Shown: in pieces, positions 41,188 through 64,000 of the stretch
How the letters are laid out: the number at the start of each line of letters is the position of its first letter
How positions within the stretch are numbered: the stretch's first letter is position 1
Origin: Octopus bimaculoides
Taxonomy: Eukaryota
DNA length: 64,000 nucleotides
Direction: 5' to 3'
NCBI RefSeq assembly: GCF_001194135.2
Contig: NC_068984.1
Span: forward strand, 116,553,867 to 116,617,866
Translations under genes and position numbers: made by a program
The notes under the pieces: model-generated
What the model was told of the DNA's origin: nothing
The model's database searches: none
The model's input: the letters and a program-made list of their open reading frames with translations, nothing else

Positions 41188-41347
41188 TTATCGTTTTGAT
41201 TCTAAATGAGACAGTTCTTTAGAAAACTTCAGTATGTCTGGCAGGTTCATTTTGAAATCTGTCTGTAGAATTTTATAGAAGAATTCAGGTGCTCTCTGTT
41301 GTACATTGTAAAGCTCTTCTAGTAGTTCTCCATCAATTGCGGAGAAG
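41188..41347 (-). CDS. ARM-TIR-SAM protein, terminal coding exon (SAM-like)
   Basis: Acceptor cttttgcttccag, phase 2 matching the previous exon. Encodes (S)FSAIDGELLEELYNVQQRAPEFFYKILQTDFKMNLPDILKFSKELSHLESKR then TAA, with a SAM-type IDG-x-LL motif. Confidence 0.88.
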
Positions 41348-41714
41348 CTGGAAGCAAAAGAAGAATAAAATTATAACAATTATGGCGCGGTAATTGGATT
41401 TAGAATAATTAGTTTATTCAGAAGAATTTGTCGAGGTATACTTTTAAACTCAGTTATTCCCCCTACTGCTATGGTCAATAACCTTTTAGCAAGTAAATCG
41501 GTCATATCCAGCCAAAATAGTCTACCTGTTTTATATTTGAACTGACAAGATTCAGCTTCTCATACCTACCTTACAATGTCATTCTAAAAATATACAATCA
41601 CATCATCAAAATATAGAAGCTACAGAAGAATGCCTGATAAATTCAAAACAATATGAATAAATAAGCAAAAAATTGAACAAAGATATTTGAATATTAAAGG
41701 GATAAATATTTCTT

Positions 41715-42145
41715 TCTAATTTTGACACAAGACCTGAAATTTGTAGTGGCGGGGGCTAGTATATTACATTGCCCCACATGCTGAACTGATATCTATTTTA
41801 TTGATTCCCAAAATAATGAAAGGCAAGGTCAACCTTAGCAGAACTTGAACTTGGAATGTAAAGATGAGTGAAGTGCAGCTAGGCATTTTGTCTGGTATGC
41901 TAACAATTCTGCCAGCTTGGTAGAATTTGGTTTCAAATTTTGGTACAAGACCAGTAATTTCAAGGGAGGAGTAAGTCAAATAACATTGACCCCAGTGTCC
42001 AAATGGTACCTATTTTATTGACACTGAAAGGATAAAAGGCAAACTTGACTCTGGCTGAATTTGAACTCAGAATGTAAAGATGGATGAAATGCTGTTAAGC
42101 CTTTTACTTGGTGTGCTAATGATTCTACCAGCTCACCTCCTTATG
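41715..42145 (-). mobile_element. Two tandem SINE family B copies in the last intron of the TIR gene
   Basis: Units at about 41715-41925 and 41930-42145. Confidence 0.85.
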
Positions 42146-42189
42146 TTGTCAATAAATATCAAAGACCTGTATGTGTCCACTGTAAAAAT

Positions 42190-42600
42190 GCATAGTCTAG
42201 TGGTTAGGATACTGTGCTCAGGATCATAAGGTCAAGGGTTCGATTTCTAGATGGGGCCATGTGTTCTTAATCAATGCATTTCAGTTCATGTTGTTCCTGT
42301 CAACTCAATGAGTACCAGCTGAGTACCGATGTAGCTCTCTCTCTCTCTCTCTCTCTCTCTCTCTCTCCCACCAGCTGTCACATCCTTGATGTGCTATTGG
42401 GTCTGTAATGAGAGGGCCAAGAGGGTATTTAGGTCTGCTCATGGCGACAGATGAATAGTACCACTATGCTTTTGCTATATTAATGTTATGTGTGTCTTTG
42501 GAGTGCTTAGCAACTCACACGTTTATTTTATGAGCAGACTGTTCTGTTGATCAGATCCACTGGAACATTCATTGTTGTCACCAATGGAGTGCCAGTTTAG
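42190..42600 (+). mobile_element. Diverged SINE family O-related copy
   Basis: gcatagtctagtggttagg head; tgtgtctttggagtgcttagcaactcacacg...tggagtgcca tail. Confidence 0.65.
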
Positions 42601-43043
42601 TCAACAGACCATCATAATTCAACGACACAGACACACACACACACACAGATGCAAACACATATGTAGATAAGGATACATATACATCATAGAAAGACAGAAT
42701 GGACTAAACAGAATAGGAGGAGACACATGGGATGGAAAGTTGCTGAAGAGGTCACAGGTGAGCGACGAAAAATTTCCAGACAATGGACATTAAATAAGAA
42801 CAGTAATAAACAAGTGAAGAATGAATATATAATGTGTGTGCTTATTTGGCAAGAGAAAAAAGACCATCCTGAAATATAACAATATCTGTTTCAATACAAA
42901 ATTTCCCATCAGGAACCGAGCAAAACAAATCCATAAATGCACGCGCACACACACACACACACACACACACACAAAGAAAGAGTTTTAAACACAGATGCAA
43001 GAATTGGACTTGATGTTAGTATAAAACTTAGATGTATGCCAAC

Positions 43044-43164
43044 CTTTCTTTGATATGTTTTAGGCCACAGGTTTCTAGCCATTTAGCAACTTGAGTTTGG
43101 TTCCAGAGCATATATGCTTGGTTGAGGTTAGCGTTTTTAGCCTGGCACAGCAGATTGGAGTTGG
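43044..43164 (-). CDS. ARM-TIR-SAM protein, linker and start of SAM-like domain
   Basis: Acceptor tcttctcttcacag, donor AAG|GTTGGC, 121 nt, phase 1-2. Encodes (A)NSNLLCQAKNANLNQAYMLWNQTQVAKWLETCGLKHIKE, with the SAM start motif W-x4-V-x2-WL-x3-GL. Confidence 0.88.
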
Positions 43165-43260
43165 CTGTGAAGAGAAGATAACAGTGGAAAATAATAAACA
43201 TGAAAAAAGGATGAAATTAGGGGTGTGCCATAGGAGAGAAACAGATAGATGTTCAATATA

Positions 43261-43497
43261 CAGGGTGGCCCAAAAGTAGATTTACAGTTATTCAACTATC
43301 CCTTTCACATTCATATATTAACAGTTTAGATCTTAATTATAAAAAAAAATATGAAACCATTATTCTATGCTAATTTATTTTATTTTGTCAAGCTCCCTTT
43401 TCAATTTGTAAGACAGAAACTTAAATGTAATAAAATGCTTTAAAAGAAATTTAAAGTGCCTATGTGATAACTGTAAACCTACTTTTGGGCCACCCTT
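43261..43497. mobile_element. Tc1/mariner-type MITE (237 bp)
   Basis: TA|CAGGGTGGCCCAAAAGTAGATTTACAGTTA...TAACTGTAAACCTACTTTTGGGCCACCCTT|TA. Confidence 0.85.
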
Positions 43498-44211
43498 TAC
43501 AGAACAGGAAAGAGAAAGATTGAGAAATGGAAAAGCTTAATGTATTTAGTACTAAATGTCATATTTGAAGAGCAGAACTAGTCTGGTTCTGTTATTTAGC
43601 CTCAGGTCAGCTGTGATTGAGCAATACTATGCTCAAATGCATTCCAGCTATGACCATGCCACTTTGCAGGGCATCTTTGATGTTATGTGAAGGCACATGG
43701 CCTAGTGTTTGAGCTCCAAATGCAAAGAGCCAAAATTATGCTGCAAATCATTTTTTTCTGATGCTCTAATGATTCTACCAACGTGTTACCTTACAGGTGA
43801 ATATAGAAGATTAATTAGGAACTGTGAGTATTCATCACATTCATACCTTTCCTAGTTGCACTTGGAAATCAAAACTGGTTTTCATATTTGATTTGCAACA
43901 AAAAAACACCTGCCAAATAATGTTATGGTAATTATTTTTTTAAGTAATGATATCTTAATAAGTAATGATTTGTCTAACAAGCAAAGGTATATGCCAATAC
44001 AACCACTCACCTGTTTCAGAAAAATTGAATGGGAAGTAATACAAATGTTAAATGGAACCTACAGATGTAGGACATTTATGATAACAGTTAAAGAATAGGA
44101 GGTATTTACAACTAAAAGTAGAAAATAAGTTGTATGGAACATCTTACTGTATCCCCCATTGATTGGACATAGTGAGAAATATTAACATTTTAAATAATTA
44201 AAGATACTAAC

Positions 44212-62052: not shown

Positions 62053-62333
62053 CAGGGGTTTTCAAACTTTTTGACTTGCGGACCCCTTTATATTTCAGGC
62101 TTTACCTTAGGGGGTCCCCCTTATAAACGCTTATGAAATTTATACATAAATATTTGCTTAAAATAACATATAATTTTACATTTGTTTATTTAACAGTATT
62201 TAACAAGTAGGTTTATTGTCAATTAAAAGATTTTGATTAAAAAACATATATAAAATCAAATTGCCCATAAAAAGTATTTGCTGTCCACGGACCCCCTGTT
62301 TTGTCCTTGCGGATCACAGTTTGAAAACCCCTG
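62053..62333. mobile_element. hAT-like MITE
   Basis: TIR CAGGGGTTTTCAAAC / GTTTGAAAACCCCTG, flanked by direct repeat cctataa (7 bp; 8 if the terminal G is shared). Confidence 0.8.
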
Positions 62334-62410
62334 CCTATAAGGAAGGCAACGCTATAAGTATTTTATTGAAACAAGAAAAAAATGTAATTCTAAAAACTGA
62401 CTCTGTGTGT

Positions 62411-62514
62411 ATGTGTGTGTGTGTGTGTGTGTGTGTGTGTGTGTGTGTGTGTGTGTGTGTGTGTGTGTGTGTGTGTGTGTGTGTGTGTGTGTGTGTGTGT
62501 GTGTGTGTGTGTGT
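62411..62514. repeat. (TG)n microsatellite
   Basis: Pure TG run of about 100 bp. Confidence 0.95.
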
Positions 62515-63019
62515 AATGAAGGCAATATGGAAGGAACAACTTTTAACAAACATAGTGAAAGAGAGAGAGAGAAAGAGATGTGCAGGTGTTGCAGTGTAGT
62601 GGTATGGGATGGTGGGGGAAGGTAGATGTATAGGTGTAATTGTATTGTGAGAGGAAGACATAGAACTGGGGATATGGCTGAAGGTGTGAATGTGAGCTAA
62701 AAAGGGAGACAAGAAAAATGTGACATTTTCTGATAAAACATTGGTGAAAAAAATAATAAACAACTTCAAGATGTCCTGCTATATTTTAGATAAATGTTTT
62801 ATATATACACATACATTAACATAGGTCATTCAATTTTTCTCAGCTGATCAATGGGCTGATTGAGTAAACCTATCAATAATGAACCTATAATGACTACTGG
62901 AAACAGCTGTAAGCCAAATTTACTACAATGAAATAAAATATGTAATGAACGTTATTTATGCCTTGTGTCTCATACATTTATATATTATATATATATACAT
63001 ATGTATATGTATATATGTA

Positions 63020-63402
63020 TAACTTGGCACTCTGTTGGTTACGATGACGAGGGTTTCTGTTGATCCGATCAACAGAAGAGCTTGATCATGAAATTAACGT
63101 GTAAGTGGTTGAGCACTCCACAGACGCGTGTACCCTTAACGTAGCTCTCGGGGAAATTCAGCATGACACAGTGCGTGACAAGGCTGCCCCTTTGAAATAC
63201 AGGTACAACACAAACAGGAACAAAGAGTGGGAGAAAGTTGTGGTGGAAGAGTACAGCAGGGTTTGCCACCATCCCCTGCCGGAGCCTCGTGGAGTTTTAG
63301 GTGTTTTCGCTCAATAAACACCCACAACAACCGGTCTGGGAATTGGAACCACAATTCCACAACCGTGAGTCCTCTGCCCTAACCACTGGGCCATTGTGCC
63401 TC
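63020..63402 (-). mobile_element. SINE family O (full length)
   Basis: Reverse complement of 3567-3949; head ggaggcacaatggcccagtggttaggg. Confidence 0.9.
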
Positions 63403-63404
63403 CA

Positions 63405-63641
63405 CACACACACATACACATATACATACACACATATTCATACATACCTTCAAGACATCCTGCTTCCTTTTGAATTAATGCTTTGTTCTTGCCATTGAAA
63501 GAAAGTGCCCAAAGTCCATTTATAACTAAAAGAATTTCCTCTTCAGAAAGGGGATTGTTTATATATAGATTTTCTTCTTGTAAAAGACGAACATAAAATG
63601 TTAAGATACCATTCTGAACCAGTTGCACTTTGTTGACATCA
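63405..63641 (-). other. Identical 237-bp copy of the ARM exon 3' part and donor (probable assembly duplication)
   Basis: Matches 63727-63963 at offset 322 and ends at the N-gap 63642-63679. Confidence 0.75.
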
Positions 63642-63769
63642 NNNNNNNNNNNNNNNNNNNNNNNNNNNNNNNNNNNNNNATATATATATATATATATATA
63701 TATATATATATATATATATATATATACACACACACATACACATATACATACACACATATTCATACATAC

Positions 63770-64000
63770 CTTCAAGACATCCTGCTTCCTTTTGAATTAA
63801 TGCTTTGTTCTTGCCATTGAAAGAAAGTGCCCAAAGTCCATTTATAACTAAAAGAATTTCCTCTTCAGAAAGGGGATTGTTTATATATAGATTTTCTTCT
63901 TGTAAAAGACGAACATAAAATGTTAAGATACCATTCTGAACCAGTTGCACTTTGTTGACATCACTTGCAGACAGGTTAAATAAACCCCTGAGAATTTCTG
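63770..64000 (-). CDS. ARM-TIR-SAM protein, armadillo-like repeat exon (5' end outside window)
   Basis: Open frame EILRGLFNLSASDVNKVQLVQNGILTFYVRLLQEENLYINNPLSEEEILLVINGLWALSFNGKNKALIQKEAGCLE, with two ARM-like L-x-N/A-L-S...NK motifs. Ends at donor GAAG|GTATGT, phase 1. Confidence 0.85.

Follow-up and report, generated by a model that had tools for sequence, protein, structure and literature searches.

A probable ARM-TIR-SAM gene in a partly assembled Octopus bimaculoides locus combines the domain types of SARM1 in a different order

Among described proteins, SARM1 and its counterparts dSarm and Caenorhabditis elegans TIR-1 offer one close comparison for the gene analyzed here: they are cytosolic hydrolases of nicotinamide adenine dinucleotide (NAD+) of similar size, which carry the same three domain types, armadillo (ARM) repeats, SAM and TIR, arranged as ARM-SAM-SAM-TIR. 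The other is provided by the metazoan ARM-TIR proteins, a class whose function is given as unknown in immune-gene surveys of oyster (PMC4346834) and of Aplysia (PMC9334734), the latter with 11 genes. The ecTIR-DC concept is cited in PMC6321704, and a 2026 preprint presenting a TIR atlas describes as entirely uncharacterised several clades of animal TIRs that are common among molluscs and cnidarians (PMC13142454). The surveys naming the ARM-TIR class make no mention of a SAM tail (PMC9334734, PMC4346834). In this work we analyze a stretch of 64,000 nucleotides (nt) of the Octopus bimaculoides genome (assembly GCF_001194135.2, contig NC_068984.1, positions 116,553,867 to 116,617,866 of the forward strand), referred to below as the window. 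An apparently intact gene from a large ARM-TIR-SAM family, with a cytosolic product, very probably has its 3′ half on the minus strand of 41189-64000, where some 340 of its approximately 650-800 codons lie. An original prediction for this stretch had proposed one spliced gene with this domain order, and the same order is indeed found in homologs, including intronless single open reading frames (ORFs).

The gene model comprises seven minus-strand exons (Table 1), named here after the domains that they encode. All visible exon ends are AG acceptors or GT donors, the phases run 1, 1, 1, 1, 1, 2 and stop, and the joined frames contain no stop codon. Two of the 14 exon ends are out of sight, the ARM1 acceptor lying beyond the window and the TIRa donor inside an assembly gap, so that the predicted set of seven GT-AG exons with compatible phases is borne out for the visible ends and not for these two. 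Because single-exon matches to the family profile, computed among all ORFs in the window, reach E-values of 8e-31 for TIRc, 2e-19 for TIRb, 1e-13 for SAMb and 4e-7 for ARM1 (the last with the ARM-region profile of homologs), the exon signal lies well above chance. ARM1 is also recovered by tblastn with residues 463-534 of a Sinanodonta homolog (P0046; E=7e-11); it is still open at the window end, 64000, and approximately the 5′ half of the gene, some 300-450 codons, lies beyond. The peptides on which the prediction had been based are present on the minus strand where it had placed them, both in the TIR region (GGSTLEAM at 45064-45041, SPNCRT at 44980-44963, IIPL at 44395-44384 and PDGWLG at 44362-44345) and in the SAM tail (WNQTQVAKWL at 43105-43076 and IDGELL at 41337-41320). 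Of the quoted HIMISY, HIMIS and a further TA can be read (CAT ATT ATG ATT AGT TA); the final Y was a guess, since only TA precedes the run of N.

Table 1. Features of the ARM-TIR-SAM gene in the window; a slash marks the splice junction, and exon letters are in upper case
Feature	Position	Strand	Peptide	Boundaries and remarks
Exon ARM1	63770-64000, coding from 63998	-	EILRGLFNLSASDVNKVQLVQNGILTFYVRLLQEENLYINNPLSEEEILLVINGLWALSFNGKNKALIQKEAGCLE	donor GAAG/gtatgt, phase 1
Exon ARM2, last armadillo repeat	50561-50638	-	ALHRVITHGSEASRHAGRGIFWELQS	78 nt; phase 1 to 1; acceptor ctttttgcag/, donor CAA/gtaacg
Exon TIRa, TIR start (beta-A strand)	47591-47624	-	(N)NLSIPHIMIS + TA	acceptor ttcttttcag/, phase 1; gap cuts after 34 nt
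Exon TIRb	44962-45063	-	(G)GSTLEAMALAVERSAVVLIGVSQSYKDSPNCRT	acceptor tattatag/, donor ACAG/gtaagt; phase 1 to 1
Exon TIRc	44212-44427	-	ESEYVFRLRKDIIPLMVQKNYIPDGWLGMLVGTRLYFDFSTSKDFDIQLPRLFKEIGNRGLLVSKDESLINV	
Exon SAMa, linker and SAM helix 1	43044-43164	-	ANSNLLCQAKNANLNQAYMLWNQTQVAKWLETCGLKHIKE	acceptor cttcacag/, donor AAAG/gttggc; phase 1 to 2
Exon SAMb, SAM helices 2-5 and stop	41189-41347	-	SFSAIDGELLEELYNVQQRAPEFFYKILQTDFKMNLPDILKFSKELSHLESKR, then stop	stop TAA 41191-41189
AATAAA polyadenylation-like signal	41081-41086	-		~100 nt past the stop
Assembly gap	47154-47590			hides the rest of TIRa (~88 nt, ~29 codons), the TIRa donor and part of an intron
Duplicate of ARM1 3′ part and intron start	63404-63641	-		assembly duplication, no separate exon

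The short ARM2 exon was missed by the family profile, spotted by eye within the ORF at 50726-50415 and then confirmed by alignment, in which it falls on HA.RG..WEL.S of P0046 and of an Owenia homolog (P0048), unbroken from ARM1 (HAGRGIFWELQS against HAARGVVWELES in P0046 and HATRGALWVIEE in P0048). A direct splice from ARM1 to TIRa is compatible in phase, but it is superseded by ARM2, which exactly fills the hole that such a splice leaves in the alignment. The ORF at 48801-48604 (GHLDQKVVLKIKETLDNVILNTLQTGDELV...) was tried as an ARM exon and rejected: a TGA in frame follows its good acceptor, its possible donors are in phase 0 or 2 instead of 1, and it has no match to Pfam or to the family profile. 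A longer TIRb starting at 45104 (xMQFNHNRFVFHIIGGSTLEAM), similar to the exon layout of Batillaria, seems less probable. The HMMER match stops short of the added part, this part would take the place of the W and D of VWMD, which are conserved at more than 97%, and the acceptor of the shorter exon coincides with a Ruditapes intron.

Both parts of the gene point to the same relatives. We joined the readable peptides into an N-terminal query of 114 residues (ARM1, ARM2 and TIRa) and a C-terminal query of 199 residues (TIRb to SAMb), and the two match the same full-length proteins collinearly, covering residues 273-393 and 424-636 of Owenia P0048 and residues 463-588 and 619-812 of Sinanodonta P0046. 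The hole that separates the two halves in the homolog alignment measures 30 residues, equal to the content expected of the gap. The full-length proteins matched by both halves come from bivalves, annelids, amphioxus and corals, have 550-800 residues and are about 35-52% identical to the window gene. Members of the metazoan ARM-TIR group, among them Sinanodonta KAL3836546.1, Owenia CAH1775998.1, Dreissena XP_052214796.1, Branchiostoma XP_019613750.1 and Pocillopora XP_058953289, have the same layout of armadillo repeats, TIR_2-type TIR and C-terminal SAM. They are collinear with the octopus gene over every readable exon at 35-52% identity, and share with it the motifs H[VI]MISYQW (partly readable in the window), GSTLEAMA.AVE, SPNCR.E.EY, DGWLG and APEFFY; the linker between ARM2 and TIR is shorter in the window gene than in these relatives.

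Gene structure is equally informative. Four intron positions (before GSTLEAM, at CRT/E, before the SAM tail and inside SAM) are common to the window gene and a gene of the bivalve Ruditapes, in which one exon encodes the stretch matching the hidden part of TIRa and the intron downstream of it has the same position; the gastropod Batillaria has a different intron layout in TIR. The ENA metagenome contig ERZ25073805 contains tandem intronless paralogues of 650 and 708 residues that encode ARM, TIR and SAM within one ORF, and because the order recurs inside such ORFs it is not an assembly artefact. Every readable family-invariant residue is kept in the window gene. The locus thus holds a real, probably intact and partly assembled gene, a further member of the catalogued ARM-TIR kind and not a new kind of protein.

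ARM1 and ARM2 encode two armadillo repeats placed directly N-terminal of TIR, and both are matched by the ARM-region profile of homologs. Searched against the PDB, the family ARM profile finds designed armadillo proteins, Vac8 and beta-catenin at E-values of 8e-12 to 3e-28, and the N-terminal family profile finds Vac8 at 1e-27 and beta-catenin at 1e-15, with ODAD2 also matched. SARM1 is absent among the best 60 of 101 PDB matches (E<=0.01) of the N-terminal profile. The likeness to Vac8/beta-catenin-type proteins covers the N-terminal 300-400 residues of family members and is confined to the repeat scaffold, these proteins being without TIR or SAM. In relatives the N-terminal ARM region is long, about 300-450 residues, and the matching part of the window gene lies beyond base 64000. 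Most full-length relatives (P0032, P0035, P0036, P0037 and others) begin with MG[CS]xxS/T, a start resembling those that are myristoylated or palmitoylated, which suggests lipid anchoring of these relatives to a membrane; the window gene's own start is likewise beyond base 64000. Vac8, which among proteins of solved structure is also the best sequence match of the ARM region, is acylated at an N-terminal MG. SARM1, in contrast, is generally known to carry a mitochondrial targeting sequence. In the readable half of the window gene there is neither a transmembrane segment nor a leucine-rich repeat receptor part, in keeping with the predicted non-receptor protein.

The C-terminal tail of the window gene, 77 residues long, folds as a SAM domain. 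Its AlphaFold2 model has five helices and a predicted local distance difference test score of 94, and the best 50 matches of this model in the PDB, searched with Foldseek, are all SAM domains, with template modelling (TM) scores of up to 0.74. The original prediction, which had proposed a SAM-like tail, is therefore upheld on this point. A profile of 17 family tails finds the SAM structures of ETV6 (8e-9), liprin-beta (3e-8) and SARM1 SAM1 (2e-6), together with those of Shank2, neurabin and DGK-delta, and 10 of the 17 tails match Pfam SAM_1, the best at 2e-7. The family pattern W..V..WL ... DG..L.EL ... APEFFY ... LKF is present in the window gene. By sequence identity the tail is 30-33% identical to SARM1 SAM1-2, with SAM1 as its closest SAM domain (TM score 0.71, root-mean-square deviation, rmsd, 2.4 A). 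The most similar SAM domains, those of ETV6, Shank, DGK-delta, Scm and SARM1, are self-associating.

For the TIR domain, the window peptide scores 42.8 bits with Pfam TIR_2 (cut-off 28) and a full-length relative 88 bits. The readable invariant columns are all kept, including GSTLEAMA.AVE, SPNCR.E.EY, IIPL and DGWLG; H.MISYQW...VWMD is interrupted by the gap and only partly readable. A search of PDB sequences with the TIR profile finds Cat1, a CRISPR-associated NADase TIR, at 4e-6, RPS4 at 3e-3 and SARM1 at 0.02, and no TIR of TLR, MyD88 or IL-1R even at E<=10. In the hidden Markov model (HMM) alignment, the Glu of the family motif SPNCR[ST]E falls on the Glu of 'WCVRE' in RPS4 and on that of 'DWVHKE' in SARM1. 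The latter we take to be E642 in the chain numbering of the alignment, by established knowledge a catalytic residue. This Glu is kept in 182 of 189 aligned family TIRs. In the window gene its codon is split as G/AA over the junction of TIRb and TIRc, with G at 44962 and AA at 44427-44426. The family TIR is thus similar to that of SARM1 in being of the TIR_2 type and in its Glu and BB-loop Gly, but the sequence match is weak and W638 of SARM1 is replaced by N, S or A. With the enzymatic TIRs of prokaryotes and plants (Cat1, SPARTA TIR-APAZ, RPS4/RUN1), which supply the best profile matches and have Glu at the same helix position, the contrast is in the other partner domains and in the Trp of their WC..E, which the ARM-TIR-SAM family is missing. 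The best single-domain structural matches of a homolog TIR are SPARTA TIRs (rmsd 2.4-3.4 A over ~135-145 alignment columns).

The explanation that we favor for these features, tentatively and with somewhat less than even confidence, is a self-assembling TIR that would be driven by SAM and cleave NAD+, with the armadillo solenoid as a regulatory or docking module. According to this proposal, the C-terminal SAM would make the protein self-associate, which would bring the TIRs together through the highly conserved surface formed by the BB loop and alpha-B (GSTLEAMA.AVE), and the assembled TIRs would cleave NAD+ with the Glu of SPNCR[ST]E, aligned to SARM1 E642 and to the Glu of RPS4 'WCVRE'. The long, canonical N-terminal armadillo solenoid would either keep the TIR off or bind an activating partner or ligand, and the MG[CS]xxS start of most full-length relatives would anchor the protein to a membrane. 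Taken by itself, the enzymatic part, TIR as NADase, is possible on the motif and profile evidence, and we stop short of calling it probable. Exon structure, domain identities, family membership, the SAM fold and the conservation of the Glu are direct results of the analysis, whereas oligomerisation, NADase activity, control by ARM and membrane anchoring are inferred. The logic is plausibly shared with SARM1, namely a TIR that SAM assembles and ARM restrains, and by this analogy the octopus gene would plausibly encode a protein working like SARM1 without belonging to its orthologous group.

A substantial alternative, about as credible as the enzymatic part of this proposal, holds that the same gene and family have a TIR that is a non-enzymatic scaffold, the protein being an adaptor or regulator of Toll/IL-1R-type signaling; it would recruit or sequester other TIR proteins such as MyD88 or TLRs, while SAM would multimerise it and ARM would dock partners. 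In comparative immunology, ARM-TIR proteins are regarded as putative adaptors (PMC4346834, PMC9334734, PMC6321704), and several of our own observations fit this role and weigh against the enzymatic proposal. Four residues before the Glu, where SARM1 has W638 and plant TIRs and Cat1 have the Trp of WC..E, 129 family TIRs have N, 33 have S and 11 have A, and none has W; the window gene has N there. Foldseek, run on the model of a 317-residue homolog, places the scaffold TIRs of Hydra TRR-2 and MyD88 as near as those of SPARTA, RPS4 and SARM1, and the most conserved surface of the family, BB loop plus alpha-B, is the one that mediates TIR-TIR contacts in scaffold TIRs. The Glu alone is no proof of catalysis, because a Glu occupies the same place in the helix of TLR TIRs, which are non-enzymatic. 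Against the scaffold role stand the profile search cited above, which retrieves Cat1, RPS4 and SARM1 and none of the signaling TIRs, the near invariance of the Glu over the 189 aligned family TIRs from many phyla, and the much higher score with TIR_2 (88 bits) than with TIR (PF01582; 24 bits).

Other points against the proposal of a SAM-assembled, ARM-regulated NADase concern what can be read of the window gene itself. Pfam analysis of the joined peptide, suggested along with the original prediction, recovers TIR_2 above its cut-off, but the tail alone scores 19.3 bits with SAM_1 (cut-off 23) and Arm reaches 13.7 bits (cut-off 20.6). The gap leaves about 29 TIR residues unread, those of the beta-B strand and of the initial half of the BB loop among them, and the myristoylation-like start is known from relatives, the N-terminus of the window gene being outside the window.

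It is also conceivable, if improbable, that we are dealing with a pseudogene, or with a chimera produced by assembly, in which ARM and TIR-SAM exons come from different genes or haplotigs that scaffolding has connected across gaps, or in which the unread TIR segment is lost or broken. The assembly gives some grounds for this suspicion, as four gaps lie within the gene interval, one of them cutting an exon and another adjoining an obvious duplication artefact. The exon-cutting gap (Table 1) interrupts coding sequence. In homologs, ...MISY is separated from GSTLEAM by 29-30 residues (QWD..VK..L..GY.VWMD.E.M), and from residues 394-423 of P0048 we estimate that the hidden TIRa codons cover alpha-A, beta-B with VWMD and the beginning of the BB loop, a piece that would fit inside the gap together with its donor. 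The coding sequence presumably continues in frame across this gap; its flanks are both in phase 1, and both halves align collinearly to one protein with the 30-residue hole between them.

At the other end of the interval, 63404-63641 is repeated at 63726-63963 (direct repeat of 238 nt, 100% identity, spacing 322), abutting the gap of 38 N at 63642-63679. This duplication is an assembly artefact, judging from its sequence, and looks like unmerged overlapping ends of contigs at a (TA)n/(TG)n microsatellite; since the repeat is identical and starts exactly at the gap edge, the ARM1 exon is to be counted once. The remaining gaps, 51563-51572 and 56590-56943, fall in the 13-kb intron between ARM1 and ARM2 and hide no exon, because the homolog alignment is contiguous over the ARM1/ARM2 junction. 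All gap edges that were read consist of microsatellites. The original prediction had the domains right, but overlooked that one ARM exon is duplicated, that a gap cuts another exon and that the window contains no more than the 3′ half of the gene.

A pseudogene or chimera would further be in line with the unusually short linker between ARM2 and TIR and with the lack of a supporting gene model, given that for either half no protein above 52% identity was found among 5.8 billion non-redundant proteins. What makes it improbable is that the readable exons are all open and keep the family-invariant residues, that their order, orientation and phases are consistent with one transcript, that the hole between the halves has the expected 30 residues, that intron positions agree with the bivalve orthologue, and that hundreds of full-length relatives show the ARM-TIR-SAM order.

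The remaining alternative, that the gene is the SARM1 orthologue of the species with its domain order produced by mis-ordering of exons in the assembly, has SARM1 as the top Foldseek match of the homolog model and the 30-33% identity of SAM1 to the tail in its favor, and is refuted by the same ARM-TIR-SAM order in uninterrupted, intronless ORFs and in collinear annotated proteins of many phyla, a single SAM in place of two, an ARM region of the Vac8/beta-catenin type, a TIR match to SARM1 at E=0.02 only, and a stop codon and poly(A) signal that come after SAM. The window gene is therefore no SARM1 orthologue, for its domain order differs, it has one SAM and its ARM is of the canonical Vac8/beta-catenin type. 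SARM1 has tandem SAMs, which form its octamer ring, followed by a C-terminal TIR, whereas the window gene ends with a single SAM of 77 residues and a stop. Nor does the ARM region of the family resemble, among the best 60 of the 101 PDB matches, the SARM1-type ARM with its allosteric site for nicotinamide mononucleotide and NAD+. The original description of the locus as the SARM1 domain set in a different order accordingly stands for the domain types, but not for the number of SAMs, the kind of ARM, or the TIR, which is nearer to Cat1 (4e-6) than to SARM1.

The family to which the gene belongs is widespread. An exhaustive profile search, covering 1.84 billion cluster representatives, returned 12,588 matches at E<=1e-3 and 1,438 cluster representatives at E<=1e-30; the best 150 are mostly proteins of 550-800 residues with the profile at the C-terminus. 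Members occur in cnidarians, molluscs, annelids, hemichordates, amphioxus and basal teleosts, and include sequences from Sinanodonta, Dreissena, Ruditapes, Ylistrum, Batillaria, Owenia, Dimorphilus, Saccoglossus, Branchiostoma and Pocillopora among invertebrates and from Arapaima, Scleropages and Synaphobranchus among fishes. All are labeled 'uncharacterized' or 'TIR domain-containing', some with the automatic UniProt name 'ADP-ribosyl cyclase/cyclic ADP-ribose hydrolase'. The expectation of similar uncharacterised models in other invertebrates was thus borne out, although the teleost members show that the family is not restricted to invertebrates. A search for the species' own annotated protein found none closer than 52% to the C-terminal half and none for the N-terminal half. 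Because the set of 5.8 billion yielded nothing above 52% identity for either half, the gene seems to be unannotated in the species and its near relatives.

Several related loci deserve mention. On contig ERZ25073805 the paralogues form an array at 1-1058, 10001-10954 and 13354-15480, and are intronless, compared with seven or more exons and 23 kb for the window gene; a 317-residue ORF lying between them (P0007) looks 5′-truncated, because its upstream frames are full of stops. In Ruditapes philippinarum (JAKTTH010013264.1), an ARM2-like exon at 6621-6710 precedes the annotated start of LOC132726752, a model of 237 residues that starts at the M of HVMISY; this and several other models starting with MISYQW are probably 5′-truncated RefSeq models. 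P0047 (1925 residues, Picozoa sp. SAG11, EukProt) and P0034 (1195 residues, Dimorphilus) are far longer and share the same ARM-TIR core. P0047 comes from a non-animal protist single-cell assembly and could be explained by contamination, by a fusion model or by a wider distribution among eukaryotes.

The window as a whole is eukaryotic DNA of 36% G+C with 17 runs of N and many microsatellites, and scans of it with Rfam and for tRNA gave no matches. Remnants of mariner/Tc1-like transposase ORFs occur on the plus strand at 37979-38320 and 58789-59022, with ...WQQDSAPCHTSRR... and ...WQQDSAPGHTSKR..., the second inside the 13-kb intron between ARM1 and ARM2; the best database match of the mariner-like ORF at 37979-38317 is an Octopus bimaculoides protein of 68% identity. 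One interspersed repeat resembling a short interspersed nuclear element (SINE), presumably akin to an octopus SINE, appears in minus-strand frames at 45316-45414, 53126-53293 and 60413-60535, and also at ~20600-20800, 17259-17747 and 63069-63380. Its copies fill introns and give rise to recurring pseudo-peptides in ORF lists, such as ...ISTRLTKNKSWGRFSRLKVLLQHGHSQLTETSKRE and ...GSVPLCGTLGKCLLL. On the plus strand at 4114-4485, an ORF of 123 residues with the Cys-rich pattern C..C.A..W..E....CC..GKV.L, which to us recalls the N-terminal region of Helitron-like helicases, is probably a further transposon remnant.

For the octopus genome, this analysis supplies a model of a gene that seems to have escaped annotation, and locates the points at which the assembly interrupts it. 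The family is of more biological interest than the locus, being widespread from corals to basal teleosts and combining the three domain types of the axon-death enzyme SARM1 in another order while keeping the Glu at the catalytic position. A bolder proposal, which we regard as rather unlikely, is that ARM-TIR-SAM proteins might constitute, next to SARM1 and independently of it, a second lineage of regulated animal TIR enzymes that consume NAD+, tethered to membranes by N-terminal acylation, switched on by SAM polymerisation and endowed with a pocket that does without the canonical Trp. If this were true, they would possibly yield different nucleotide products or signals in the immunity or cell death of cnidarians, lophotrochozoans and basal chordates.

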